This document shows, one piece after another, positions 3,251-52,450 of a stretch of DNA of 52,450 nt. Each line of letters opens with the position of its first letter. Within the stretch, counting starts at the first letter, position 1. This stretch comes from Macrostomum lignano (Eukaryota). The notes beneath the pieces are model-generated. The model ran no database searches, had not been told where the DNA came from, and saw only the letters and a list, made by a program, of their open reading frames with translations. Location: assembly GCA_002269645.1 (NCBI GenBank), contig NIVC01004266.1, positions 1 to 52,450 on the forward strand, written 5' to 3'. Made by a program: the position numbers and the translations under genes.

Positions 3251-6200
3251 ATGTCATCGGGTATTGATAAGGCGCTTCGCCAGGTTATTAATGTGAGTGT
3301 GCGCTGACTGCCTTTTATGTAGGCTTTACAACTGCTTGTGTAATTATTGGCCTGAGTCATTGGCAGCTTGAACCATAGACTATTTATTGAGGGTCTGAGA
3401 TGCTTACAGCAGCCATAGACTAACAAAATTATGGCTTGAGTTCATGGCAGCTAATGCCATAGACTAACCAACTGATAGCAACAGTCCCTGGTAGTTTAAG
3501 CCATAAACCAACCAACTGATAGCCAGAGTTCCTGGTATTTTCAGCCATAGACTAACCAACTGATAGCCAGAGTTCCTGGTATTTTCAGCCATAGACTAAC
3601 CAACTGATAGCCAGAGTTCCTGGTATTTTCAGCCATAGACTAACCAACTGATAGCAACAGTCCCCGGTGGTTTAAGCCATAAACCAACCAACTGATAGCA
3701 AGAGTTCCTTTTAAGCTATAGACTACCCAACTGATAGCGAGAGTCCCTGGTAGTTTGAGCCATAGACTAATCCGATCAAGCACCGGAGACGCTGGCATTT
3801 CAAAAAACAACACTGCCAAATACCATTCTTTAACCGCAGGATGTGTACACCGCCTGCAAGCAGAAGGAGCAGCAGGCTGCTGACGCCAGCGCTGACAACA
3901 GCCCTGTTGGCATGGACTCTGCAGCTGTGCAGGAGAAACTGCAGTTCCTTGAGTGCTACTTGAATAGCGATGTAAGTTTTATTTTGTATATGAAATATGT
4001 AGCCTTAGCCTCTAAAAGTCTCCCCGAATAAGTCAAATTCATCAGCATGTGCAATTCCTAAACCATTGACATTGCAGACCAATAGTTTGTCCAATCGTTG
4101 CAAGGCCGGCTCCGCGTTCATCGCTTTGAAAAAGCACTATCTGGGATGTAATCTGTCCAAAGCTTTGGAGTACTTTGCCTGTAAGACACTTGTTTAATTT
4201 GTTAAGCTAAGCCGAACAATTCAGGGCCACTGTACACCCTGTGTGAGCGTGTGTATGAGTGCGTGCCGTGAGTACAGTATTGGCGCGCTTGTGTGCGCTC
4301 AGGAGTCTGCGGAATGGGCAGAGATAGCCTCGGCGCTGATTGTGGGCACCATGGTGTCTGCAGCCCTCATGCAATTTTTATTTGTGAGTTAGCTAGTTAG
4401 TCAGTCAGTCAGTCATTTAGTCAGTCAGTCAATCAGTCAGCCAGTCAGTCAGTCAGTCAGTCAGCCAGTCAGTCAGCCAGTCAGTCAGCCAGTCAGTTAG
4501 TCAGCCAGTCAGTCAGTCAGTCAGCCAGTCAGTCAGCCAGTCAGTCAGTCAGTCAGTCAGTCAGTCAGCCAGTCAGTCAGTCAGTCAGTCAGCCAGTCAG
4601 TCAGCCAGTCAGTCAGTCAGTCAGTTAGTTAGTCAGTGAAAGCTTCTCCTCCGCCCCATTCCAGGCTCCGCGCTGCCGATGCAGATCTGCCTCATCCAGG
4701 GCCTGGTCACCGCGCACGAGCCCAGCCTCACGGAGGAGAGCGCCGACATCTTGCTGGAGACGCTGTACTCCGGGCTGAAGCAGCAGGACCTGGTGTTCCA
4801 CTGCCTCACCTGCCTGCTGAGTCTGCTCAGCCTTGGCGAGTCCGCCGCAACTCCGCCGGCTCCAGCGGAGGCAGCGGGCGGCTCGCAGCAGCAGCAGCGC
4901 AACTTCTTCACCGCCCCGGCCGTGCTGCAGTCGATCCTGCGCCGCCTGCTGGGCTTCTGGGACTCCCCGCTGTACTTTGTGCCCAACCTGACCGTGAAGA
5001 TCTTCCACTGCATCGTGGCTAACTGGTCCACAGACTCCGGCTCGCCCAATCCCGCCCTGGCTGCCTTCATTGACGAGCTCTGGACAATGCCCATGCTGTG
5101 CCGCGGCGCCCTGCGCTTCTGGTCTGCGCTGGTGCCGCTGCTAGACGAGATCCGCATCATCGGCCTCTGCAGCCGCCTGGTTGACGCTCTGGACGTCAAC
5201 TACACCGCCAGCGCCGCTGCCAGTCTTTTTGGCGTCATCGCCGGGGCGCTGACCCAGCGCGGCAAGACGGACCTGCTAGCCCAGATCTTCCCGGACATGT
5301 GCCACCGGATGCGCCACATGTCGCAGCTGTCGCAGCGCAACTTCTGCTCCCTGATCCTGCCCGTGTACATCGCCTCCGACACGAGTTTCAATTTCAGCGC
5401 CCGGGAACTACCGGACGGCAACAATCCGCACGGGAACTTCTTCGACATTCAGTGCTGGTGCAGCGTGGCCAAGCACTGCAAGCTGCGCGGCCGCCTGCCT
5501 AGAATGCGCATGGCTGATCTGAGAATGGCCCTCATCCACTGCGATGAGCAGACCAGGGCGGCTGCACTGGAGGTGCTCTGTCTGAGCAACAAGCCGGTTA
5601 GTTGCCTGCCCCTGACTGTGTTTGAAATTGCCGATATGTTGTGTAATTAACTTTATAAAGACTGTGTCCCCTTGCCGCACCCAGACGTGCCACATCACGC
5701 CGCAGTCGCTGAAGATGATCCTGGAGTTCTTCTGCCTCAACATGAACTCCGACCAGCCGCCGTTCCGCCAGCGCCTCCTGGCCTGCTTCCGGTCCGTCTG
5801 CCAGCAGGTGAAGGACGGCTGCATCCAGGCACTGCCGGAGCTGAGCACCCGCCTGGCCGCTGAGCCGCCGGCTGAACTGGCGGCAGCTGAAGGGGCAGAG
5901 GAGTACGACGATGGCGGCGGCGCCTCCCGGCTGGTGCACTGCCTGCTGCCCGACATCTCCGTGGCGACGCGGATTGCCCAGTTCGACGCCATCGTCTCCT
6001 CCGCCGCCGTGATCGGCGCCAACTCCGGCGACAAGACCGACAGCGCCGAGGAGTTCCTGGTGTTCGAGGACGACCCGTCGAAGACTTCGCCGGATGCTTT
6101 GCTTAGCAACGTGAAACTGTTGGCGCAGTTCGTTCGTCAGCTGTTGGATAGCGACGTGTGGTTTCCTGGAGCCTGCTACCAGCGCCAGCGCACCTGCATT

Positions 6201-9200
6201 GAGTACCTGCAGATCGCCTGCACGCACTATTTTGGCAGCTCGTCAGGAATGAAGAAACGCGGCTATCCTAGCGAAGTGCTGGACAAGGTGACTCTTATTG
6301 ACGATCTGGGCCATCTTTGGATCCACCAATCTCCAATAATCCCACTCTGGAAATCCAAAGATCCCGCATATTCCCAATAATCCCCCTCTGGAAATTCCAA
6401 GATCTCATCCATCTCCAATAAGCCGACTCTATAAGTCACAATATCCCGTATACGAGCTATTCCCAATAATCCAACTGGAAATCCCAATCTCCCATTCATC
6501 TTCAATAATCACACTCTGGCAATCACAATATCCCATTCATCTCCAATAATCCCACTCTGGAAATCTCAAGATCCCGTATATTCTCAATAATATCACTCTG
6601 GTAATCCTAAGATCCCGTATATTCTCAATAATCCCACTCTGAAAATCCCAAGATCGTGTCTATTCTCAATAATCCCACTCTGGAAATCCCAAGACCCCAC
6701 TCATCTCCAATAATCTCACTCTGAAAAGCCCAATATCCCGTCTATTCCCAATAATCCCACTCTAGAAATTCTAATATCCCATTTTCCCATCACTAAGAGC
6801 GCCATGCATCCCACGCTTCCCCACTCCCACCGCAGGTGACTGAATTCCTTCGCGAGGCGTTCCGCCGCTTCGGCGCTCCCATGGACGGTCCGGAAGCCGC
6901 TGAACGCGTTGTTGGCCGCCTGCTCCGCTCGGCGCTGCACTGCTCCCGGGACATCCAGGACAGCATGCTGGGCCTGCTGACTGAGCACTACCCCATGGCC
7001 CGCCTGCCGCAGGCCGGCCCGGCCAGTCTGGACCGCCTGCTGCCGCTGCTGCTCCGCCGGTGCCATTCGCCGGACGCCGAGCAGTTCCACGGAGCCGGCC
7101 GTGTGCTCGCCTACCTGCTGGCCAATTCCGCCGTGCATGTCGGCGGCGCCGAGCCGCTGCGCTACTGCCTGGACGCGGTGGCGGCCGCCCTGGCCAAAGC
7201 CAAGGCCGAGCCTGCCGCGGCGGCCTCCGAGTGCACCGGCCACGGCTACCTGCTGGCGGCCGGCCTCTACCTCAGCCGGGGTGGCGGCGAGGTCAACCGA
7301 GGACCGGATGTGCAACGGCAGCTGTTTAACGAGGCCACCGCGCTGTGCTTCGACTTGATCGCCTCGCTGATGTCCGTCATGGGCTTCCGAGGCGGCGGCG
7401 GCGAAGGCGGAGGCGAAGTCGCAGATTGGTCAGCCGATGCGGCGCCATCGTTCGAGGAGCTCGGGCGGGCGATTGAGAAGGCGGCCGGGGTAAGTGGTGC
7501 TTAACCATGCCATTCGTTTGGTTCTCAAAATCCCAATAGCCCATAATCCTCGATTCTGAAATCCTAATAACCCATAATCCTCGATTCTGAAATCCCAATA
7601 ACCCATAATCCACGATTGTGAAATCTCATAAATTTAGATAAAAATCCTACGAACTCAAGCCCTATTATCTCAGGCGCCCCCACGCAATCACCCCCGCCAA
7701 CCGCCATCAGGTGGACGCCGATCTGGACGAGGACCTGCTGTCCGGCGCCCGGCTGTCGCCCCACTACCAGCGCATCCTGGCCTGGGCCTGGCGCAACCTG
7801 GCCATGGCTGCCGACCTGCTGGTCCAGCTGTGCGCCGCCCACCTGCGCGCCGCCGATGCCGACATCGACTTGGACGGCGTGCGCCGCGTCGGCCGCCGGC
7901 TGGCCGCCGTGGTGACGGGCAGTCGGCACCGCGGCACCATCGAGGCGGTGGCCAACTCGCTGCGCGAATTCTGCCAGCTGATCCGGTGGCGACAGGAGCT
8001 GGCCGACCTGCCAGGCGAGCTGGTCAACGCGCCGCTGGTTGCTATGGAAACGGCAAGCTATTCGGTAACCAGGCGAAGCGCCGGCCTGCCGCTGCTACTG
8101 ACCTCCGTGCTGTCGGCCGTGTGCGCCGGCCAGTGGTCGGAGCCGCTGCTGGACCGGACGGTGGCCCGGCTGCTGCGCTGCGTTGAGTCGGCCACGGCCG
8201 ATAAGGCGACTGCGGAGGACGAGGCCAAAGGCAGCGATAAGGTGGGCCTCTCAAAGGTTCTGCCCACGCAGCTTTGTTTAAATTGGCTCCAAGCATTACT
8301 GACGCCAAGAAACGCCCCCAATCCATCAGAGAATCCCCCAACCCATCAGAGAATCGCCCAATCCTTCAGAGAATCGCCCAAATCCACCAGAAAATCCCCC
8401 AATCCATCAGAGAATCTCCCTATCCTTTAGAGAATCGCGACAATCCATCAGAGAATCGCCCCAATCCATCAGAGAATCGCCCCAATCCATCAGAGAATCG
8501 CCCCAATCCATCAGAGAATCGCCCCAATCCATCAGAGAATCGCCCCAATCCATCAGAGAATCGCCCTATCCATCAGAAGAATCGGCCCAAAAGCCTTTGC
8601 AAGAGCACTCGAGAATGGAAGGTCTGCATTGCTGTTTCTCCAGCTGTCTCCATTCCCTCACTCGCCGTCTCCCAGGTGGACAGCCCGAAGGTGCACGCCC
8701 TGAACCTGCTGCGTGCAGTGGTTCGCGAAGCGGCCCTGTACAATGCCACCACGCGGCACCACGAGGCCATCACCCGGGCCACCCTGACCAACTTCTCCGA
8801 CCGCTCCTGGGCGGTGCGCAACGCCTGCGTCCAGCTGCTTGGCGCGCTGTCCCAGCGGATGCTGGGCGTCGGCCGGCCGCACATCACGCCGACTGAGTTC
8901 TTCTCGGCTTATCCTCGGTTGCAGCGCTGCTTCCTGGAGGTGCTGGTGCGCGGCGCCAATCCCAGCAGCGCCAAGTTCATCGCCCACCAGGCCACGGTGC
9001 CTGTGCTGTCTTTCCTGTCGCAGCTATCGCCGGATCCTCCGACCGCCCTGCTGGACAATGTCGAGCCGTTCCGGCAGCCCCTGGTGACGCTGCTGTCCAG
9101 TCCGGTGTACGCCATCCGCCTCATGGCCGCCAAGTCCCTGGTGTCGTTCGCTCCGCCCAAAGTGCGGCTGGACCTGCTCAGCGCCCAGGTGCGACTTCTG

Positions 9201-19856: not shown

Positions 19857-20966
19857 ATGCTTGTGGAGTACGAGAACAGTGACTCGGAGTCCGAGTCAGA
19901 CGCTGAACAGCAGCAGCAGAAACAGGAGGAGAAGAAATCTTCAGCCAGGCAGGCGGCAGAGGAGCCGGCAGGCACTGACACTGAGGAGGCGCCCGTCATT
20001 TCCGATGACGAAGCCGAAACAGTCCAGAACGATGCGGAGCGCCAGCAGGAGGCGGCGGGCGGCGGCGTCGAGGCAGCCGATGGCCTGGCCGCGATGGCAG
20101 CCGCGGACGACACTGTGGAGGAGAATCTGCGAATGCGCGTTCCCGCGTCCGCCCAGGCGCCAGCGACATCCGGGTCGGGGACTTCGGCGGAGCCAGCAGC
20201 CGCGGCGGCCGAATCGCTGGCTCAGCAGAAGCAGCAAAGACAGAAGCAACAGCAGCTGCTGCTGCAGCAAAAGCGCCGCCGACTTCTCCTGTTGGAACCG
20301 AGCGCTGCCGCCAACGGCGCTGACGAGGACGACGATGAAGACGACGAGGACGCGGTCAAGCGTCGCCGGATCGCGTCGGCCGCCGCCGCCGGCCAGATGC
20401 GCGGCGCCACGTCACTGCTGGCGCAGCTGCCCAAGCCCAAGGCGCTGGCCGTCCGCGAGGGCGCCGGGCGCGTCTTCGTGCCGCCGATGCGGCCGACAAT
20501 CCGGCCACCGAGTCCGCCGGCGCCGAAGCTGCCAGCGGCGACATCTTCGATGGTGGATGACGAAGCGCCGTTTGCCGCGGAGCCTGCCGACTCCAACCTG
20601 CCGCAGCAGCAGAGCCTTCTTGGCGCCGTCCTGCCGCCCAGCGAGCTGCACCGCTACCGCCAGGCCACCGGCGCCTCGCTCACCGCCGACGTCGCCGCTG
20701 ACGCTGGCAGCGGCGGGATCATCGACATCCGACAGTCTGACCAGGTGGCCGGCGCCGAGCTCGAGCTGACGAAACAGTTAACTCGCAACGCCGGCGCCGA
20801 TGCAAGGCGCAAGCCGGAAGGCCCCGAGCCCAGCTCGATGGCGAAGCGGAAGCACCAGATCACCTACCTGGCCTATCAGGCCAAGGAGCGCGAGCTGGAG
20901 CTGAAAAACTCCTGGTCTGACGCGCGCTTCAATCAGCGGAGCAGTCAGAGGAAGTACGGCTTCTGA
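19857..20966 (+). CDS. PRCC: Proline-rich protein PRCC homolog, single coding exon, 369 aa
   Basis: N-terminal MLVEYENSDSESE and C-terminal KRKHQITYLAYQAKERELELKNSW...RKYGF* are the conserved PRCC termini. Confidence 0.93.
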   Translation: MLVEYENSDSESESDAEQQQQKQEEKKSSARQAAEEPAGTDTEEAPVISDDEAETVQNDAERQQEAAGGGVEAADGLAAMAAADDTVEENLRMRVPASAQAPATSGSGTSAEPAAAAAESLAQQKQQRQKQQQLLLQQKRRRLLLLEPSAAANGADEDDDEDDEDAVKRRRIASAAAAGQMRGATSLLAQLPKPKALAVREGAGRVFVPPMRPTIRPPSPPAPKLPAATSSMVDDEAPFAAEPADSNLPQQQSLLGAVLPPSELHRYRQATGASLTADVAADAGSGGIIDIRQSDQVAGAELELTKQLTRNAGADARRKPEGPEPSSMAKRKHQITYLAYQAKERELELKNSWSDARFNQRSSQRKYGF

Positions 20967-21265
20967 TTGGCCGGACTGTGGAGTTGGTTACTTTTTTGCT
21001 TGCATTTTATGTCTCTGCGGGTAGCGTGTCTTTTGCTTTGTATGCCTCGTATATTTTGCGGTATAGAATAGAGTCTTAGCAACCGGGAGTTTAGGCGTCC
21101 TTGTATAGTGCAAATATGGAATATATTCTCATGCTAAACGTTCATGTTTTCTATTATTGAACTGGAAATCTATTATATTTCGTGTGCAACTCTGCTTTCT
21201 CGTAACATTGCTCTTTAGCTGCAGTAGTTGTGTGTCATCATTTTTGCGCGAATTCAAACTGCCGA

Positions 21266-24916: not shown

Positions 24917-26116
24917 CTAGCACCAGTAAGCGCCCTCATCATCCGGGGCCTCGACTGTACGTGCCAACATCGTCATGGCCGCCGGTCGACCGGAGGCTAC
25001 ATAGAACGGGTACCGCTGCTGCTGCTGCTGCTGCTGCTGTTGATGTCTGCGCGGCGGCGGCGGTGGCGGCGCCAACGGCATCGGGAAGTTCGCCGGATGC
25101 GGCTGCGGCGGCGGCAGACCGGCTGCGGAGGGCTGCGACGATCGCAAGGCCGCTCCGCTGAGACAGCTTTGATGACGGCTTGAGTTGTTGAAGGACGGAG
25201 GGTAGGCGGGGTGCCGCTCGGCGGCCGGCTGATATCCACGGGACGGCGGCGCCGGGTGCCGATAGGGCTGCGACTGCCGATGGTACATCTGCGGCTGCTG
25301 CACCGACCGCCTCGCCCGCGGCATCATGGGCGGTGACATGTCGTCGTAGTCACCCGCTTCGACCATTGAAGCGTCGATGACCAGGCGTAGGTCGGCGTCG
25401 GAAGCTATCGACTCTTCAACCATCAGGTCCTCGTCCGGTTCGAGCTGGTCGACCTCCGCGTCGAGCTCCTCGTCAACAAGTGACCCGGAAATGCCGCCCA
25501 TCTCGTACTCCTCCATGACGACGTCGAACTCGTTGAGATCGTCTAGAAGCTGTTCGGGTGGCGGACTGGGCACCCGGTCCAACCTCCGAGTCGGCGACTC
25601 TGTCGTCGTCGGTGGTGCAGCTGCCCAAACTGCGTCGGCGAGGACAGCGACGGCGTCGGCGACATTGACGGCGGTGTTGGTGGTCGAGACGGTGACGCGT
25701 TCAGCCGAGGAAAGTTGATGCCAGACGGCGAACAAAATCCGTGCCGGCCGCCGGTGGCGCCAGCGACGCCAGTTTGAACCGTCGGCGACGGCAGGACGTG
25801 CGGCATCCGGTCGTGGTCGTCTGGCAGGCGCAGGTTCAAGCTGCTTGGTGGTGGAGGCTTCCTCGCTGCCGCTGCCGCTGCGAGCTGTTGTTGATGCTGC
25901 TGCTGCTGCTGCTGCTGAAGGTACTGAGGATGCTGAAAGGTTTGCGCTGGGCGCGACTGCTGCTGCAGCGTCGGCACCGGCTGCGACAGCGGGGGCGGCG
26001 AGTTCGACGGCGAGGGCGTTTTCGAACGCGACTCCAGCGAAGTGGCACGCATCGCCTGAGACAGCTCTGGCCGCGGTGCCGATAGGGACTGGGACTGCTG
26101 CTGCTTTTGCGGCTGC

Positions 26117-26154
<38 letters not shown>

Positions 26155-29100
26155 TTGTTGAAACTGCAGCTGTTGTTGTTGCTGCTTCTGCTGTTGTTGC
26201 TGTTGATACTTCAGTTGTTGTTGTTGTTGTTGTTGTTGTTGCTGCTGCTGCTGCTGCTGCGGGTTGAGCGGTTGCTGGCGCGCAGTGGAGCCGCTTCGAG
26301 GCGGCATCTGGCGGCCGGACTGCTGATGATGATTTTGGTAGCTGCTGGTCACCGAGTCGTCGGACCGCTGACCGCGACCTAAGGGGTGCCGCGGCAGGTG
26401 GAAATATACAGTTAGAATTCGTGTTGCCAAGGAGCTTATAACCCGGTCTCGCGATGCAGGCCCAGTTTAAGGAAGCCAATTGGCTAAAACAAGCTTGTGC
26501 GCATCGCAAAACCAGCTGCAGTGACCTCGTGCCGTATTGCGAGAGGCGGCAGCTGGCGCAGAGCGTCAATAACTAATAATAGTGCATGGAAACCAAAATC
26601 TGCTGGTGAAAGTGCCTCTACAGCCACCGGTGCTTCCGTGTCTGAGCGGTGCCTCTGAATAAAATTTCTGGTACACCAACGCATCCTTGAGGGGCCGGAT
26701 TCCCGTGGAAATGAGCAAAATTAGAAATCTGACCGTCACCAATATAAGGAATTTATTCCCCGATATCCAAAAGTAGACAAAGGAGCAATGAGCAATTTTG
26801 GCTAGTTCTTACGGCTGAATTTTGAGCACATGTATGGAAACTGATGTCGGGGCAGATGGACGATGAGCCAAGCAGCATATTTCAGTCTGCAGAACGGCCA
26901 AGACAGAAAATACGGTGCACGACAGTTTAAAATTGTAAATGCTAAACTACTCATTCATAATCATATTGCGAGCGTAAATCTACATTTCTACGCTTATGCG
27001 AGACAACATCGATGTTGAAAAGTAAAACAAAGATCTAAGCGCCTTGTGGCGTACGCAGGGATTTTAATTGGACCCTAACCTAAATGGCGCCAGTATTCGG
27101 GGTCCTGGTTGGCGCCCCTGTCCTCTGGGCCGGTGGATGCCAAGTCCAAGTGGTGGTAAAGTTCGAACTATGCTGCCTCTTATTTGGAGTTTGAAGGAGC
27201 CCCCGGCCACCTCTGCCCCCTCTGCCCCCTCTGCCCCCTCCGCCCCCCTCTGCGTATGCCACACTGCTGGGCGCTGCTACTCGGTGCTACTGCCAGCCCT
27301 GCAAGATTCTTGGCATATTTTACACCTTAAGGGCTTCGCTGCAGCTGATCAGCAAAACAAGTATCTAAACGGACGTGACGGGACGAAAGCACGCGTGAAA
27401 AACCGGTGCATCAAAACAAAATTGAGGAAATTCTATGAGACATCGAATGCTCTCAGTAATGCCGTTGTCTGTGCAGTATTATCATTTATTTTCAGAGGGC
27501 AGACCCTTAAAATTTAACTGGAAATTTCAATCTTGCAATTCCACGGAGTGAAGCATCACTCAACTCCGAGGAGGTACCCCTGAAATACAAGGTCAAAAGT
27601 GGGCTGTTGTTTAGCGGAATGTTTGCGACAACCTCAATCTGAGACCCTATCAGCGGTGAGTAAAACAAATAGGTTAAAAAGAAGATTCACAATATTTAAT
27701 TTATTACTTTACACAATGTTATTAATTATGATAGAAACGATGCGGTCGCTTCTTCAAGCAAAAGATCATGTATAACATCATGTACTCGAAATAACACCAA
27801 CACAGACTGGGGCGGGAAGAGACGTGGACTGCAAAGCGTTAAGCGGAAAGTCAGACAAACAGCTAATGACGCAGGTCACATGTTCATCAATGCAAATGCT
27901 ATAGATTAATACGCGGCAGTAACTGAGACTCTCTTGACTGACAATAACAGGCATGGCTCATGCAAATAGTTTTTCATGAGTAGTATGAACCGCGTTTTAT
28001 GTGGAGTAGTACTGGCGGCAGGAATCTTGAATAGTTTTAAACCAATTTACAAAAGGCAGCATTGGAGTATACTATTATAATGCACTAATAAACTAAAGCC
28101 AATATAGTTGTCTAGAGCTTGTCACTGTTGTCTAGAGCTTGTCTCTGTTGTCTAGAGCTTATCTCTGTTGTCTAGAGCTTGTCTCTGTTGTCTAGAGCTT
28201 ATCTCTGTTGTCTAAAGCTTGTCACTGTTGTCTAGAGCTTGTCACTGTTGTCTAAAACTTGTCTCTGTTTTCTAGAGCTCGTCTCTGTTGTCTAAAACTT
28301 GTCTCTGTTGTCTAGAGCTTGTATCTGTTGTCTAGAGCTTGTCTCTGTTGTCTAGAGTTTGTCAATGCTGACTAGAGATATCTACTAGAACTTTTCGATG
28401 TTTATAAAGATTGTGGCTCATAGTCTTGCTGTCTATCAATATGCGTCCAACGACTTTTCTTGCGGGGGGTGATTGGTGCCATGGTGGCTTAGCGAACGAA
28501 GGGGTTCAAACTCGAGTTCAGACTCAACCTTATAAGGACTCAGGCGACCAACTCACCAAAATAGCGCTCCCGCCGCTCCCTCTCGGCCAGCTGGTGGGCC
28601 TGGTCAATCATGCTCGACACCGCCTGCGCGAACCCACCTGCTGCAGCGGCTCCGAACGGACTCGAGGCCATGCCCGGCCCCGGGTAGCCGGCGGGCGCCT
28701 GGTGCTGACGATACGGTTGATGATGATAATGAGGCGACGGAGATGTCGGACGCGACGGGGTCGGGCTTGAGTCGAGATAGTTGCGCAGGTTGCCGTGCTT
28801 GTACTGTTGAACGGCGAGCGGTTTCAGGATATGAAAAGCAGGGTTACAGAGATGTGAACTGACGAGCAAAGCATCGAGTAAACCCTTAAAACCATTTGCC
28901 GGAGAAAGGGGTTCGCGGGGAAACTTCAGTTTGTATAAAATCCTATTGCGGGAAGTCTGTGACTTTCTGGCGCTGTGAATTTGATCGGAAAGCTGGGTCT
29001 GAGCAACTGAGACCGTCACCAAATTCAAGAAATGCAAAGAAGCGGCTGGGCGGCTTGTGTTGAAGGAAACTTGGCTCCTGTAAAAAATTTCCCGAACCTG

Positions 29101-44100: not shown

Positions 44101-47100
44101 CTGTCCGGTTCGAGTGGCTTGGCTCAGCATTCGGCAGCGTTGAATAAGAAAATTTAACCTGATCTCAAACTCTCCAACCCGATCGGCTGCATGCTTTCAG
44201 CTGATTGAAACTGCCTGAGAGGCTATTTGGGAGCAAGGATTAACATTTGCTCTGCTCAGGTTGAGCTCTGCAACTGTCCTGAAGACTCGGGGCAATGGGC
44301 AGCCCGCCAGCGTACCCGACGTGCCCGACGCCAACGGATGTAGCTGGCAAGTTGGGAATTTTCACATTAAAATCTGCCCGTAAAATGTAAAACTTCCCCG
44401 TTTTCCAGCGACGTCGAAAGACATCGGAAGCGTCAGATTGCTGCCAGTGAGGATTGCAAACGCTGATGGAGAACACTTGGCAAGTGTGCGCCAGAATTGA
44501 ACTCAAGTGCAGGGAAGTCACTGACTCTGTTAGCTTATTTTGTCAAACTCTGATGGCTACCGAAGAACAACATTACAAAATCTTACACAGAGCTCGCAGT
44601 CATTTCATTTTTGCACACGTGCAAATAACTATAAGCACGTGTGTTACAAAATATATTGTACAAAATTAACCTCTCAAACTTTAACTTTGCAGTATATTAG
44701 TCAAAGCATTGCAAAAGCGGGGTCTGGGACCACATTATTGGCGAATCAAAATCATATTCGGTTTTGCTGTGCGTTGCCACGACAGAGAGTTCGGACACTC
44801 GGACACAGATGTTTTGCCAACTTTGATTAGCAATTCAAAACTTCAACTCATACTGATTGGAAATTATTTTTCTTCAACTATTAATTTCAAGCTAAACGTC
44901 AGTATGAAGCGGAATATTTGTTATAACAAAACAGATAATAAGTGCGTTATCTTGCTGAATAATGGATTAAAACAAATCACTAATTTGTGACTACAACTTT
45001 AACTTTTTTGTTTGTTCAAATCGATGCGGTGCATTGAAATCAACGGGCAAATGCGGAGAACTTAAGCATTTCTGCTGCATTGTCGCAATCAAAAGCTTGG
45101 GTTGAAATTATTTCATATCAAGTAGCCACAATAATTAATATTGTCAAGAAATTGCATTAAATATGTTTAAAATAAATGATAAACTGATTCAGATTTTCTC
45201 ATTCAAATGCATTGAAAAGTCTTGGGGAGAAATCAATAATGAGTACGAGAATTCGCAGGCATAATGCGGGAAGTCGCTTGCCGCCACTTTCGGGAGGATC
45301 AGACGACGTGGATGGGAAAACATAACTTTTAGGCTGCAGGTGCAGGCAGACAGACACTGGTTCACGAAATCTCTGTGACTAGTTGTGTTCCGCAGACTTC
45401 ATGTGCGCAGGAACAGCCTCTTTATTCGATCGCTCTACCTTTGTGGAGGCTTCTGGTTACTAGCAGCTATATACGATTAATTAACTCAAGCATGCACGAG
45501 GGTCGAGAGGGCATTTCAGCCGCGTACTTACGAGACGGTGGTCGACTTTGTCATGAAATGACTGGCAGTGAGAGAGGGGACATGCGACAAGATGAGAAGA
45601 ATCCCAAATCCGCTTTGACAGCGTGCTTGCTTGCAGTTAGCAAACACCTTTTTATAGCACTCAGCTTTGTTTAACTCTCACTGCCTACCAGGTACTTCTC
45701 CAGACTGCCTACCAGGTACTCACCCAGACTATCTAACATACAAAGCCACCAGACATGTAACGCCATCACAGAATAAAATGTGCAATTTGTATTCAGCAGA
45801 GAGCTTTCGCTGACCAGCACGGGTAATTTAGTGGGGGTTGCGGTAATTACTCGGACCCATCGGGGTGGTTACATACGCTCGTACAACGCCATAACAAAAA
45901 GCTGCAGGCTACTCGTAACTGATTAAGTAGTAAGATTTCCAAATGTCTGTGGGAAATTCCTCGAGCTTCGCAGTTTAAAATGTTGCTAATTCTGGCTTAA
46001 GTAAAACAAAGCAATAATCAATGAGCGTCAATAAATTGTGCATATAAGTAGGTTGATACTGGTTTAATGTTAATTTTCCGCAAAATATTACACTAAATAC
46101 GCAGTTAAAATGTATACAAACTTATTATCTGGAATTTTGAGCACTCTCACTACGGCTCGTAATTAATAAGAAATTATGGGCCTGCTCAAAGCGCTTTGCC
46201 AGGCCAAACGCCAGCGCACATTAGCATCACAGCCAGCTCCCCGGCATCTGACCTCAATTTGGCACTCAGAGTTTCTTACATGTCAGCTCCAATCAGGCCA
46301 GACAGTCTGCAAAGTCAACCCGGTCGGAGCTTTCTTTACTGCTGATAAGAAATCGGGGAGTCTCTGAGACCGATTCTACCGTTATATCCGGCTATTCTAC
46401 CGATATATCCGACTAGTCTACCGTTATATCCGGCTATTCTACCGATATATCCGGCTATTCCACCGTCATATCCGACTATTTTTCCGGTTTATCCAAAAGT
46501 TCTCAAACGTTCTTCAATATTTCGGTGCAAATTGCAAATGAGTAGCATATAAAGAGGTAAAAAATGGCGTGAAGCAATGTAGAATCGAGTAAACCAGAAA
46601 GGGTTGCGGTGCGGACCAGCGACCACGGGTTTAGTAATCGGGTACTGCAAAGGAAACAGTCCCCAGAACCGTGGGATGTCAGGGATTTAAATAAGTTATG
46701 TGAAAAGACTGCAACAGTTTGCTCATACAAGCTACTCACTGACCAGAGTGTTCAAGAAAGGTAAAAACAGCTACGAGCAGGCAACCCTCGGCCTCGGACT
46801 TACTTGATGATGAAAGCGAAAAGGGCGCACAGCACCACCGTTGCGTCGAGGATGTTCCACAGGTCGCGGCAGTAGGATCCGGGATGCAGAATGATGCCTA
46901 GGTCAACAATCTGAATTGAGTGGTGCGAATTTGTAAAGTTTGGTAACTGGGGGCTTTGGATTCCACTGAACCTGGGCCCCCACACGCAAGCACACGCTCC
47001 CAGTCCGCCGACTCCCCTGAGCAGGCACACAAGCGCGCGGATACGTACGCAGGCGCACACTCACACAGGAGTGTACAGCGGCGCTAACTTTATTTATCGT

Positions 47101-47499
47101 TAGGCATGTACACTTCACTGTGCCTTGGGGGTTGGTTCACGAGGTTGTTAATTGCACGAGCAGAGCCAAGCCAAGACTCCAATTCAGCCCCAAATTAATG
47201 AGACTGCACTTGGAATCGAGCCTGGGCCGCTGGCACATCACTGGAACTGGCCCCTACGATCAGCCTTATTCGCAGTGCCCGGAATCCTGCTCAGAGGACT
47301 CACCTTCAGCAGCATCTCCACGGTAAACACCAGGGTGAAGGCGTAGTCGAAATAGCCCAAATAGATATTCTTTAGAGTTGCGTTCTTCGTGTCCACCGGG
47401 TCCTCGGCGGCCAGGGCGATGCTGCTGGCGCAGATGATGATCATGATGAACAGGTCGAAGTAGCGCAGATTCACCACGAAGTGACAAAACTTGCGAATC
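24917..47499 (-). CDS. CACNA1A: Voltage-gated calcium channel Cav2 alpha-1 subunit (cacophony/unc-2; CACNA1A/B/E ortholog), domain III to C-terminus; 5' part outside window
   Basis: Phase-consistent exons: 47304..47499, 46804..46910, 43010..43118, 42768..42928, 41769..41912 (TGEGWP), 39911..40112, 39309..39473, 38091..38201 or 36807..36962, 35852..35935, 34318..35212 (ATGESWQ, EF-hand), 33290..33396 (IQ-like [16 protein letters not shown]), 32999..33121 (less certain), 31392..31504, 30700..30808, 28557..28803, 24917..26378 (one frameshift near 25625). Cav2-specific [21 protein letters not shown] and C-terminal xWC* PDZ ligand. Symbol denotes the ortholog group. Confidence 0.93.
27080..27124 (-). 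CDS. Candidate 45-nt cassette exon of the Cav2 C-terminus ([15 protein letters not shown])
   Basis: CCCAG| acceptor, TTAG|GTTAGG donor, phase 1-1, open in the required frame. Confidence 0.4.
   Translation of the reverse strand, partial: RTGAPTRTPNTGAI
28095..28375. repeat. 20-bp minisatellite (TGTTGTCTAGAGCTTGTCTC), Cav2 intron
   Basis: Visible tandem units. Confidence 0.9.
29725..30540. repeat. 57-bp highly homogeneous minisatellite, Cav2 intron (possibly partly exonic)
   Basis: About 14 units of GGCCCGGGTCCAAAGCCACCGTTCATTGGCTGAGAGCCTCTGTTCGGAGTGAGGAGG. Confidence 0.95.
35279..35790. repeat. (CTGGT)n followed by a 44-bp minisatellite, Cav2 intron
   Basis: Visible tandem units. Confidence 0.92.
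36807..36962 (-). CDS. Cav2 domain IV S1-S2 linker + S2, alternative exon b (long linker)
   Basis: [52 protein letters not shown]; GCAG|, AAG|GTACAT; phase 0-0. Confidence 0.88.
38091..38201 (-). CDS. Cav2 domain IV S1-S2 linker + S2, alternative exon a (short linker)
   Basis: [37 protein letters not shown]; TTTCAG|, AGG|GTAAGC; phase 0-0. Confidence 0.82.
38595..39175. repeat. 39/40-bp G-rich minisatellite (GGGACGGGAGTGAGGTGGGTGTAGACATCAAGGGTCGTGG)
   Basis: Visible tandem units. Confidence 0.93.
40310..41500. repeat. 42-bp G-rich minisatellite (GGGCAGGGAGTGAGGTTGGTGTTACACAAGAGAGTAGTGAGA); main array to ~41070, remnant 41415..41500
   Basis: Visible tandem units. Confidence 0.93.
42447..42565 (-). 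repeat. Dispersed ~115-bp element, copy B (Cav2 intron)
   Basis: Reverse complement matches 4226..4340. Confidence 0.8.
43450..43467 (-). CDS. Candidate 18-nt microexon, Cav2 domain III S3-S4 linker
   Basis: TTTTTATTTTAG|CATCATGGCCAAATTCAA|GTAAGA; phase 2-2, no stop. Confidence 0.6.
45532..45561 (-). CDS. Candidate 30-nt microexon, Cav2 domain III S3-S4 linker
   Basis: TCCCCTCTCTCACTGCCAG|TCATTTCATGACAAAGTCGACCACCGTCTC|GTAAGT; phase 2-2, no stop. Confidence 0.6.
46376..46480. repeat. Short ~21-bp tandem repeat (CTACCGTTATATCCGGCTATT)
   Basis: Visible units. Confidence 0.8.
46995..47085 (-). repeat. Dispersed ~115-bp element, copy C (Cav2 intron, more diverged)
   Basis: Reverse complement shares CTGTACACTCCTGTGTGAG and GCGCGCTTGTGTGC with copy A. 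Confidence 0.7.
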
Positions 47500-47559
47500 C
47501 TGCGAAATGTTTCAAGCGTACCATTTGTAAGATCTTTCATTCATAAAAAAGCTGGTATA

Positions 47560-48083: not shown

Positions 48084-48387
<304 letters not shown>

Positions 48388-48596
48388 GCATGCAATGGCG
48401 GGTACAGCACGCCTGTGAAGCTTGAGACAGACTAGGCCTACGGGCTAAGGTCTGCGATCCTACACACCTGCACCCCCTCTATTCTGGTGCAGGAATGGCA
48501 GGAGAACTCTCTCCAAGCTGACTCGCAAGCCGACCCAGGGGTTCACGCCCCGCATGTGTTCAAGGCAGCTCTAGGGCTGCTGGACTGACTGGGCTC
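48388..48596 (+). ncRNA. Candidate HDV-like self-cleaving ribozyme in the retrotransposon 5' UTR
   Basis: P1 GCAUGC(A) 48388 / (C)GCAUGU 48551..48557; P2 CCCAG 48534..48538 / CUGGG 48589..48593; P3 GGG/CCC; L3 UUCACG; P1.1 C48544-G48558; P4 48560..48584; J4/2 CUGA with catalytic C48585. Confidence 0.65.
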
Positions 48597-48990
48597 CGGC
48601 GGCGGCAACCCATCCGTGGCCTTTTGGCCAAGTTGGGTACGGGCTCCGCCCGGAAGTGCACCTGTGCGTATCAGGTACCTCTGGCCACGGCTCTGAGGAA
48701 CAGGTACCACCCTCTGACCTTAACAGGGTATGCGGCCAGTCCGCAGGCTCCGGAGGCAGTCCTCCTGCTTCCCTCAAGGGCCCAGTGTAGTACCGTGCTG
48801 ATGGTCCTTTGGTTCGGCCTCTGGTTCTTCCAAGCCGGGCTCTTAGCCGGGGAGTTTCTCGGTTGCTAGCGGTCGGGCCGGTACGGGCTTAAGCCACCCC
48901 CCGGTCGCTACCTCTTGGCCTGGTTGTTGGGTTTGGGGTTACGGCCCAGCGGCTTCTCACCTTTAGTCCCCACTCGCCTTTCAGCGACTC

Positions 48991-50433
48991 ATGGAGTATT
49001 CATTTACCTCCGACACGTCCGAGGCTGCTGGAGCACCAACCGAGGTTGGCACGGCGGCCCAGCCGGACATTCGCAACACCGGAACCCCCGGTGCCTCTCA
49101 ATCTGCCGCTGCCGCCGCTCAGGATAATACCGGAGTGGCTGGACAAGACAGCGGACCTCAGATTTCAAAAAAGAAGGCCCGTAGCATTGCTCGCTACAAA
49201 GCCTTTCTCCAGCGCAAAGCGGAGGAACGGAGGAATGCGAAAGCCGCCCCTCCGGCCACCTCTGAGGAGGGTGCCGGTAACTCTGCGAACCCCGCGGAGG
49301 AGCCGACATCCGACAAGGGGGTGGACCCCGCGCGCCGGTCTGATGCGTCAGGTGCCGCCGAAGCTCCTGGTGCGGCTGGCCCCTCCCGTGACCGGACCTC
49401 TGCCCGTGTGGAAGCTCCCACGGCCGTGGAGGGATCCAAAGCGGGGGGCGCTGGCCAAACCACAAAGCCGAAGCGAACCTACGCGGCTATGGCCAAAAGG
49501 CAGCCGGCCCTGGTTATCCAAGGCCAGGAGACGCCTCTTACGGCCGAACAGCTCGACCTTATCTGGCGCAGGTTGGACTCCCACCTGGTCAAGATGGCCT
49601 TGAGCGGCACTACCATTCGAGTCCAAAAGACGAAAGTCGAGGACCAAGCCCTTTATATCCAGCCCACCGACAGCCAGTCAGGACAGCAGCTCCTCGAGCT
49701 GCTGAAAACCTTCGACTGGGGTACGGAGCTGGAGAACCTGTTCATCTACAGGGAGGACGAGCGACCCCGGACACACCGGCACCGTGCCTGGATCTCGGCT
49801 CGCAGCTGCATCACCAAGGCCGACGAGCTGCGTCACCTGCTAGTGGCTTCCAACCCGGAGCTACCGGCCAACGGTGTCGTAGTTCACGAGACCATCTCCA
49901 AGCCGGGCGGAGACGGTTTCACGGCTATTCTTGGACTGTCGGATAGCTGGATGCTCCGCTACCCGGACATGTCCATCATCTCTGTCGGGCTGTTGCAGAT
50001 TCAGCTCTTTAGTTTTGAGTCTGACGCCACCCGCCCACCGCCCCCGGAGAAGCGTAAGCGGGCAGTCGGGGGCTCTGCCGGGCGGAAACGCCCAGGAAAA
50101 GAAGCTCCCGGTCGTCACGACCCCTTCCGAGGACGTGGACCCTGTCAGAGGGAAAGCCGCGAAAGCTGCAGCAACAGGCGGACGTGGAAAGGGCCGGAAA
50201 CCCGCCCGGAACACTATTCGCTCTGGTCTGACTCAGCGGGCGAAGCAGCTGCTGGACACCGCCAAGGCCCCCAACCGCAGCCACCCCCAGCCCAGTGTCA
50301 CCACTGCGGCCCCCCCGGAAAACCGGGCCGAGAGCGAGACTGCCGCCCAGGTAGCGACCTCGCCCTCGACCATGGAATCCATCCGGGAGGAGCCCATGGA
50401 GCTGGAGCCTGGAGCTATCGGCGAGGCAGGTAA
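48991..50433 (+). pseudogene. Retrotransposon ORF1 (DUF4780-like), frameshifted near ~50040
   Basis: The 48991 frame is protein-like to about LQIQLF; continuation appears in the 49931 frame. Confidence 0.7.
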
Positions 50434-52450
50434 GAAAGGTAAGATTCCGAATATTCCTGCTGGTTTTGACTGTTTTCAAGACCCCCAAAACCCCAGAGCA
50501 GCCATTTTCGTATCTACCCACCTCAAAGCTTGGCACAGACCGGACCTCTCTGACAGAGACCTCTGTGTCATTCAGTCTAACCACATTATCACCAACCGCA
50601 CGGTCATCATCGCCTCGATCTATATCCCTGGCGATGGCCCCGCGGTTCCACCCAACCTCACCTCCCTCGTGGACTACTGCTCTAACCGTAGGTTCGAGCT
50701 GCTGGTGGCGGGCGACATCAACGCTCACCACACCCACTGGGGCAGTAATACTTTCAATAGCAGAGGCGAGGAACTCCTTGCTTACATCTGCACCACCAAC
50801 ACTGAGTTTTGCAACATTGGTGGAACCCCCACCTTTGACAACGGGCGATGGACGGAGGCCCTCGACGTTACCCTCGTCTCCCATGGCTTGGCTCCTTTAG
50901 TCAAGGACTGGGAGGTGTGGGACGAAGAGAAGTCTCTGTCTGACCATCGCTTCGTTCGTTTTCGTTTGCAATCCTCTTGCCCCAAGCCTCACATTCTGTG
51001 GAAAAGGAACGTCCGGAACACTGATTGGACGGCTTTCACGGAAACCCTGAAATGCCAGACAGATCAGCTGACTACCGTCGCTCCAACCACCTGTCAGGAA
51101 GTGGATGACCTTGCAGACTTGCTCAGCAAGACCGTCCTGACAGCCCATGAGGCTTCCTGTCCTCTTAAAGCCTACAAAGGCAAAAAATCCCCCCCTGGTG
51201 GCACCCGGCGCTCGGATCCACCGGCGCAAGGCAAAGTGCCTCCAACGGAAAGCTCGCAAGAGCAAGGACCCAGCTGACCTGGCCGCCTATCAAGAAGGCG
51301 ATCCGCGACTTTAAGCGTGAAACCAGGAAAGCCAAGTCCGACAAATGGCGCCAATACTGCGGAGTTAAGAAGGCACCCGCCCTACTTCGCGCGTAGTTAA
51401 GGCTCTCACCCTCGACAAAATGTCAAAGCTCTCAGTCATTAAAAGACCGGACGCGCCGGCTCGCTGAGAACCCTGGGGAATCGCTGGACATTATGCTCAC
51501 CAGCTCTTTCCCACGTGCCGCACCGCAGCTAGGCCCACCGGACCACTCTCCGGGCGGACAATCCTGGCTTCGACATCATTACTAGAGAGAGCGACGGCTC
51601 GCGCCGCAAAATCCTTCTCTCCTTTCAGTCCCCGGGTCCTGACAACATTTATCCTGCCTTCCTTCATGAGGCAGTTAAAAATGACAGGTTTCTCGGCCTC
51701 CTCTGCAACCTCTTCAAGGCCAGCATTACCCTCGGGTATGTGCCAAAAGCCTGGCAAGAGGCTACGGTAGTCTTCATACCCAAGCCAGTAAAGGGAGACT
51801 ATCACTCCGCCAAAGCTTACCGCCCTATCAGTCTGACGTCCTTCTTCGCTCAAACTGATGGAACGGCTGGTGCTCTGGCGCCTTCTCCTCGTTGAGCTGA
51901 GGAACTCCCCGCTCTCCCTAATCAGCACGCCTTTCGTCCTGGACATTCCATCGAAAGTGCGCTGCACGCCCATTGTCGACAAGCTGGAGCGCGCCGTGCT
52001 TGGCAGTGGATACGCGCTGTCGCTTTTCCTCGACATTGATGGTGCTTTTAACAATGTGCTCTTCGAAGCCTTTAAGCGAGCCCTGGAATCCCGGGGCACG
52101 CACGAGCACCTCACCCGCTGGAATCATGTACATGGTCTCCCATCGTACTGCACCTCGCACCTCCTCCGGACACTCACGCTCCGTGGAAGTCCCAGAAAGG
52201 CGGGACCGCAAGGTGGAGTCCTCAGCCCGATCCTCTGGAACTTAGTCATGGACGAGCTGCTTGCAGCCCGCATCCGACCTGTTCAGAAGGTCGCGCTAAT
52301 GCGGACGATGTTACCGCCACTGTGGCTGGACCATCGCCCGCGTCCTCAGGGACCTCCTTCAAGCCTTCATCCACCGTGCCGAGCGCTGGGCACATAGCTG
52401 CGCCTGCGGTCTCAGGTTCTCTGAGTCTAAAACCGTGGCTATCATGTTCA
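50430..52450 (+). pseudogene. Retrotransposon ORF2 (APE endonuclease + reverse transcriptase), multiple frameshifts, N-terminus apparently missing
   Basis: APE and RT motifs are spread over several frames. Confidence 0.88.

Follow-up and report, generated by a model that had tools for sequence, protein, structure and literature searches.

Positions 48388–48593 of the window, the whole 52,450-nt stretch of Macrostomum lignano DNA analysed here, very probably constitute an HDV-like ribozyme that forms the extreme 5′ end of a flatworm APE+RT+RNase H LINE and is predicted from its sequence to cleave itself. The span of ~206 bases contains every element of the HDV-like nested double pseudoknot in the complete order P1-J1/2-P2-P3-L3-P3′-P1′-P1.1-P4-J4/2-P2′, and the same order recurs in a diverged relative of the element, L001. 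The assignment is carried by these sequence elements, by the covariation of their helices with this one relative and by the coincidence of the first paired nucleotide with the boundary of the element.

The retrotransposon copy and its 5′ junction

The 5′ boundary of the LINE lies on the plus strand, where a (GACA)76 microsatellite (48084–48387; period 4 and 76.2 copies by TRF) is followed directly by a leader of ~600 nt, ORF1 and ORF2. G48388 is the first base out of the (ACAG)n register. A preliminary description of this DNA had placed the start of the 5′ strand of P1 at this base, the first after the tract, in agreement with the TRF end point at 48387. Downstream of the ribozyme, the remaining 5′ UTR (48594–48990, plus strand) contains sequence islands that are conserved in alignment with L001. 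ORF1 (48991–50433, plus strand) is disturbed in frame after about 50035, its homologous C-terminus continuing in the frame of 49931, and ORF2 (50435–52450, plus strand), which encodes an APE endonuclease followed by RT, runs off the window end and contains frameshifts near 51277 and at about 51860. The ORF2 pieces fall in at least three different frames by tblastn, and the Pfam matches are Exo_endo_phos_2 (1.3e-19) and RVT_1 (2.4e-8). Judged by its reading frames, the window copy is a decayed LINE with both ORF1 and ORF2 frameshifted. By domain content, with RNase H read in the ORF2 of L001, the element is of the APE+RT+RNase H type.

Long stretches of the ORF1 protein match the UniRef protein P0001 of M. 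lignano residue for residue. The best solved relative of the endonuclease domain is the telomere-repeat-specific endonuclease (EN) of TRAS1 (1wdu, 1.5e-13), and clade assignment went no finer than ‘APE + RT + RNase H, EN closest to TRAS1’. No second copy of the element was found within the window, and the 5′ junction is seen directly in one genomic copy only.

Positions 1–48000 of the window are extraordinarily dense in minisatellites with periods of 17–118 nt (48 TRF rows), and further simple repeats are found at 4395–4637, (AGTC)n, and at 26095–26260, (CTG)n. On the minus strand, two ORF segments (47238–47540 and 46800–47060) resemble transmembrane segments of voltage-gated calcium-channel repeats; the retrotransposon sits antisense to these segments and, in gene orientation, upstream of them. 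The neighbouring calcium-channel-like exons lie on the opposite strand to the window copy, whose co-transcription is therefore not evident. UniRef gene models of M. lignano (P0001, P0005, P0006, P0008, P0011, P0017, P0034 and P0098) join host domains, among them BTG, ankyrin, LRR, acyltransferase, subtilase and tropomyosin, to LINE-family ORFs, and these fused models reflect either annotation artefacts or frequent sense-strand co-transcription with host genes.

Architecture and covariation of the HDV-like fold

All features of the fold lie on the plus strand. P1 consists of 6 bp between GCAUGC (48388–48393) and GCAUGU (P1′, 48552–48557), including a G+1·U48557 wobble, and the predicted scissile bond is 48387/48388. 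The 140-nt peripheral domain J1/2 (48394–48533) leads to P2, in which CCCAG (48534–48538) pairs with CUGGG (P2′, 48589–48593) at the 3′ end of the ribozyme. P3 is a helix of three Watson-Crick pairs between GGG (48539–48541) and CCC (P3′, 48549–48551), and P1′ follows P3′ immediately. The 7-nt loop L3, UUCACGC (48542–48548), contains U48542, C48546 and G48547, which are kept in L001, and C48544, the partner of G48558 in P1.1. The 3′ strand of P1.1 is G48558 and U48559 (48558–48559), of which the former makes the single Watson-Crick pair of this helix. J1.1/4, UCAAG (48560–48564), shares its CAA with L001 and precedes the P4 hairpin GCAGC-UCUAGG-GCUGC (48565–48580), which can be extended by G48564·U48581. 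Finally, J4/2, UGGACUGA (48581–48588), ends in CUGA, retains its C-U-G in L001 and places the predicted catalytic C48585 three nucleotides 5′ of P2′.

The helices named in the preliminary description are thus all present and in the right order, each at the position given for it. Two of its caveats, that L3 is one nucleotide short and that the last P1 pair is A-C, vanish with a 6-bp P1 and the 7-nt L3 UUCACGC, and the 3′ end that it set at 48596 moves to 48593. Its third caveat, a G at position −1, remains; further weak spots of the window copy are the 6-bp P1 that includes a G·U pair and the 5-bp P2, both near the lower limit of known lengths, and the single Watson-Crick pair of P1.1.

L001, a Logan contig of 6492 nt from ERR14788467, is the only relative found with a homologous 5′ UTR. 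It is a complete element with an intact ORF1, 54% identical to that of the window, and an ORF2 with APE, RT and RNase H, and its 5′ UTR aligns with that of the window across the full ~600 nt. Its base 1 is homologous to G48388 (GCCUGCAAUGG versus GCAUGCAAUGG). In L001, P1 GCCUGC (1–6) pairs with P1′ GCAGGC, J1/2 (7–169) is 163 nt long, P2 CUCAGA pairs with P2′ UCUGAG, and the P3 strands GGG and CCC enclose L3 UCUCCGU. P1.1 AG, forming a U-A and a C-G pair, is followed by J1.1/4 GCAAU; P4 is a 10-bp hairpin at the equivalent place, unrelated in sequence to the P4 of the window; and J4/2 AGCUGC contains the predicted catalytic C228, in CUGC/UCUGAG.

The differences between the two elements preserve pairing throughout. 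From the window to L001, pair 3 of P1 changes from A-U to C-G and pair 1 from G·U to G-C; in P2 one C-G pair becomes U-A and an extra A-U pair is added on both strands; in P1.1 U-A replaces C-G, and L001 gains a further C-G pair. P1, P2, P3 and P1.1 together comprise 30 paired nucleotides, of which seven are substituted, yet each of the 15 testable pairs is canonical (p = 2.4e-4 under random placement). Against this one homologue, three changes are doubly compensatory, one converts a wobble into a Watson-Crick pair and none of the 15 pairs is broken. The unpaired nucleotides of the core are also kept in both elements: the U, C and G of L3, the CAA of J1.1/4 and the CUG of J4/2. The fold had been fixed on the window sequence alone, prior to the comparison with L001, and the covariation is that of two sequences. 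The HDV-like helices of the sequence model are supported by covariation with L001. The central reading of the preliminary description, an HDV-like ribozyme with a predicted cut 5′ of G48388 at the 5′ junction, gains from a relative that keeps every helix and starts at the homologous G.

That start of the L001 contig at G1 could mark the place where the assembly graph branches as copies diverge, or an RNA end, or could be an accident. No (GACA)n was found in L001. At its other end the contig runs on for ~640 nt past the ORF2 stop (5849–6492) into sequence that has minus-strand ORFs, and neither poly(A) nor a simple-repeat tail is present. Between the ribozyme and ORF1, the leaders of the window (48594–48990) and of L001 (238–600) have islands such as CAGGTACCTCT, CCCAGTGT, TAAGCCACCCCC and CAGCGAC-CATG in common, which may represent a translation-entry or protein-binding structure.

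Unconstrained MFE folds of the window and L001 RNAs contain P1, a closed J1/2 domain, P3 and P4. The P2 strands are free in both, as the pseudoknot requires; in the window copy P2′ is accordingly unpaired in the nested fold. J1/2 itself consists of a 4-nt linker (AAUG), a closing helix (GCGGGU, 48398–48403, with ACUCGC, 48521–48526), three internal hairpins and a 7-nt linker (AAGCCGA), and the three hairpins of the preliminary description reappear in the unconstrained MFE fold. Folded alone, J1/2 forms a closed multibranch domain in the window (−55.6 kcal/mol, z −3.1) and in the 163-nt version of L001 (−83.3 kcal/mol, z −2.35), and RNAalifold on the two J1/2 sequences finds both-sided changes in 12 of 32 pairs. 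One block, AGGCC.A.GGGCUAAGGUCU.CGAU (window 48438–48466, L001 51–79), is near-invariant even though the elements otherwise differ by about 25–40%, and it forms a nested hairpin in the folds of both elements.

In R2 ribozymes P1 and P1′ are 23 to more than 700 nt apart, and silkmoth forms carry J1/2 loops of 216–498 nt (PMC3774820); a 140-nt J1/2 lies within the known range. Experiments on large HDV-like ribozymes have shown that a structured J1/2 domain activates them by drawing P1 and P2 into each other’s vicinity, a ‘pinch’ (PMC4908430), and the domain arrangement predicted here fits, by analogy, such a role.

A real ribozyme could also use a different P1 strand, GUCUGCG at about 48450, and would then cut about 62 nt inside the element. 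Six of the seven positions of this strand pair with CGCAUGU in the window and six of seven pair in L001. The one mismatch, however, falls at different pairs in the two elements, and the substitutions are not compensatory; reportedly, HDV-like ribozymes are impaired by a mismatch in P1 (PMC3774820). The segment is moreover sequestered, in the MFE fold of either element, in a conserved CAGAC/GUCUG hairpin, as the preliminary description had proposed for this competitor, and descriptors that require a fully paired P1 find the terminal strand only. We consider an internal cut extremely unlikely and retain the terminal P1 at 48388.

Motif specificity and searches for further members

To gauge how specific the motif is, we used a strict descriptor that demands G+1, a P1 of 6–7 bp, a P2 of 5 bp, a P3 of three Watson-Crick pairs, an L3 of the form U-Y-Y-N-C-G with 7–8 nt, P1.1, P4 and a C three nucleotides before P2′. 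On both strands of the 52-kb window it matches once, at 48388, and in L001 once, at position 1; a descriptor search of this kind had been suggested in the preliminary description. In 40 dinucleotide-shuffled windows the descriptor matches 0.1 loci per window, a specificity that is inflated in appearance because the descriptor was written after the candidate had been seen. A loose descriptor returns three loci in the window, including 5103–5249 and 20922–21122. Both of these fail the strict descriptor and are judged to be chance matches, the one at 5103 sitting in a 323-aa coding ORF (4679–5650) and having neither P1.1 nor a Watson-Crick P3.

Rfam holds HDV-family models that are narrow, do not encode the pseudoknot and would need to absorb a 140-nt insertion. 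These models gave no match, neither for the whole window at the gathering score nor for 48300–48800 and the window and L001 cores at E ≤ 10, so that the check with Infernal models proposed in the preliminary description returned nothing. Given the narrowness of the models, a pseudoknot that they cannot encode and the length of the insertion, this miss is weakly informative.

The question raised by these searches is whether a GC-rich, structured LINE 5′ UTR has merely been drawn as an HDV fold, with no ribozyme behind it. The spurious loose matches at 5103, inside a coding ORF, and at 20922 speak for such a chance resemblance, as do the Rfam result and the MFE z-score of the whole ribozyme, which is only −1.55 in the window. 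Since the loose descriptor yields chance matches too, the motif by itself is only suggestive, and it is the comparative evidence that convinces: in L001, three double compensatory changes stand against zero broken pairs (p about 2e-4), the catalytic-core nucleotides are conserved, and the strict descriptor, expected at 0.1 per window, matches the element start in two diverged elements. A fortuitous fold is on this evidence very improbable, and we return to the ribozyme reading.

Single-sequence and profile searches for ORF1 homologues yielded only P0001 and P0098 (UniRef, M. lignano) and P0002, which belongs to L001, and an exact look-up of the ORF1 of the window found it not on record. The closest ORF2 relative, P0004, is on a contig without a 5′ UTR. 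When metagenomes were scanned with GGGCTAAGGTCTNCGAT, the conserved block of J1/2, 120 stretches came back, all of them chance by blastn against the 5′ UTRs, and nothing was found in two IMG/VR scans. More distant relatives (L002, L003 and L124–L127; ORF2 33–37% identical) have unrelated 5′ UTRs in which, within the reach of their contigs, no strict HDV-like core was found; as these 5′ UTRs are unrelated, conservation of the ribozyme across the clade could not be shown. In place of a ribozyme-like leader, L003 (150–540) and L126 (1–170) have tandem 5′ UTR monomers.

Known systems, predicted mechanism and implications

R2, R4/Dong, RTE, Baggins and L1Tc elements, planarian R2 among them, were already known to carry HDV-like ribozymes at their 5′ ends (PMC3774820, PMC6765202). 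In R2, especially that of the silkmoth, a nested double pseudoknot likewise forms the 5′ end of a non-LTR element, with a P1 of 6–7 bp, a P2 of at least 5 bp, a 15-nt P1.1, P3 and L3 core, a variable P4, a catalytic C in J4/2, a J1/2 of hundreds of nucleotides and a separation of P1 and P1′ from 23 to more than 700 nt (PMC3774820). The element sizes read from the window match these ranges, the catalytic C being a prediction here. R2 differs in having a restriction-like endonuclease, a single ORF and 28S specificity, and many R2 ribozymes cut within the upstream 28S. In contrast, the present element has two ORFs with APE, RT and RNase H, a predicted cut at the junction itself and a J1/2 that is both conserved and structured.

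Functionally, the cleavage predicted here is most closely matched by that of Dong from Bombyx mori (R4 clade). The HDV-like ribozyme of Dong cuts in vitro exactly between (TAA)n and the element (PMC3774820), the counterpart of (TAA)n at the predicted cut here being (GACA)n. Dong differs in its single ORF and restriction-like endonuclease, and its (TAA)n is a proven target, whereas the 3′ junction of the present element lies beyond the window.

The J1/2 domain has its nearest counterpart in drz-Agam-2-1 of Anopheles gambiae, where a structured J1/2 (P1.2) on short linkers also occurs and there pinches P1 and P2 and speeds cleavage (PMC4908430). The P2 of that ribozyme is 12 bp long and its P1.2 is one helix, in contrast to the 5–6-bp P2 and the multibranch J1/2 of 140–163 nt of the elements described here.

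The L3 motif UUCACG(Y) of the window copy is common to the mammalian CPEB3 ribozyme, which differs in being intronic, compact (J1/2 of about 1 nt) and outside any transposon. P1.1 of the CPEB3 ribozyme is likewise weak and consists of a single Watson-Crick pair. In mouse Cpeb3, a primer 18 nt from the cleavage site reads GTTCACGTCGCGGCC, which contains UUCACG (PMC10919898).

Among APE-type LINEs, Baggins (LOA), RTE and L1Tc have a 5′-terminal HDV-like ribozyme that trims read-through transcripts (PMC6765202, PMC3774820). The hosts of Baggins, RTE, SART/R6 and L1Tc differ from the present one, being arthropods, nematodes, chordates and trypanosomes, and no sequence similarity was found between the present 5′ UTR and Baggins, RTE, SART, R6 or L1Tc elements. 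Ruminski et al., in 2011, reportedly placed an HDV-like ribozyme at the 5′ end of SART/R6 elements as well.

We infer the following course for catalysis, read-through transcription and translation. A transcript starting upstream would read through (GACA)n and fold co-transcriptionally, with P1 joining 48388–48393 to 48552–48557, P2 joining 48534–48538 to 48589–48593, and P3/L3, the one-pair P1.1 and P4 forming around them, while the structured 140-nt J1/2 domain would keep P1 and P2 together. C48585 of J4/2 and Mg2+ would catalyse attack by the 2′-OH of G48387 on the 48387/48388 phosphodiester. The (GACA)n would be the 5′ leaving fragment of this predicted cut, and the released element RNA would begin at G48388 with a 5′-OH. 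Full-length cDNA would regenerate the ribozyme, so that every daughter copy would carry a complete 5′ end whatever promoter had driven the transcript. The uncapped, highly structured leader of 600 nt would then have to support translation of ORF1, as has been proposed for the structured leaders of R2 and L1Tc (PMC6765202).

The possible involvement of the leader in translation bears on a further reading, in which the fold is an HDV-derived relic or a mimic that now serves as a structured leader (an internal promoter, an IRES-like element or a site for an ORF protein) and has lost cleavage, at least in this copy. The HDV-like ribozymes of R2 and L1Tc are reported to double as IRES-like, protein-binding or promoter regions (PMC6765202; PMC3383444), some R2 ribozymes found in nature fold well yet have little activity in vitro (PMC3774820), and the window copy combines a weak P1.1 and the −1 G with broken ORFs. 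Conservation, however, is concentrated on the positions of catalysis (the U, C and G of L3, the C of J4/2 and the G+1 pair), and P1 connects the core with the extreme 5′ nucleotides of the element, a link that is required only if a cut is made there. A re-purposed fold that no longer cleaves thus seems very improbable, and an active ribozyme family remains the preferred reading.

A more extended proposal is that the family consists of flatworm APE-type LINEs with a TRAS1-like EN that target (GACA)n, as Dong does (TAA)n, and are excised by their ribozyme from repeat read-through transcripts, with J1/2 and the 400-nt leader serving as the site of translation entry. We regard this as speculative and on balance doubtful: the hints at (GACA)n targeting are the (GACA)76 tract at the 5′ junction and the TRAS1-like EN only, the 3′ junction being beyond the window. 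Should the targeting reading be true, Platyhelminthes would have a first LINE that is microsatellite-specific, bears RNase H and is terminated by a ribozyme, and the start of the L001 contig might record an RNA end cleaved in vivo.

The preliminary description also held that the element may be an unreported example for its lineage. The searched literature contains no article linking HDV-like ribozymes with Macrostomum, and the suggestion is plausible in that respect, the host being a flatworm and not an insect. An HDV-like ribozyme on a non-R2 flatworm LINE is apparently unreported. Within the searched literature, flatworms were represented by the planarian R2 ribozyme and, from schistosome elements, by twister or hammerhead motifs only; those used by schistosome LINEs are variants of twister (PMC8501958).

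What is currently understood about the working of such ribozymes does not change with this finding. The ribozyme is a large HDV-like one that occurs in nature, and its conserved and covarying multibranch J1/2 would make it a useful system for asking how catalysis is tuned by peripheral domains. Gene models of this genome often join host exons to these elements, and for annotation the ribozyme would supply an exact marker of the 5′ boundary of the repeat family. For the biology of these elements, the range of ribozyme-terminated LINEs would grow to include a flatworm model that is free-living and a lineage with two ORFs and APE/RT/RNase H.
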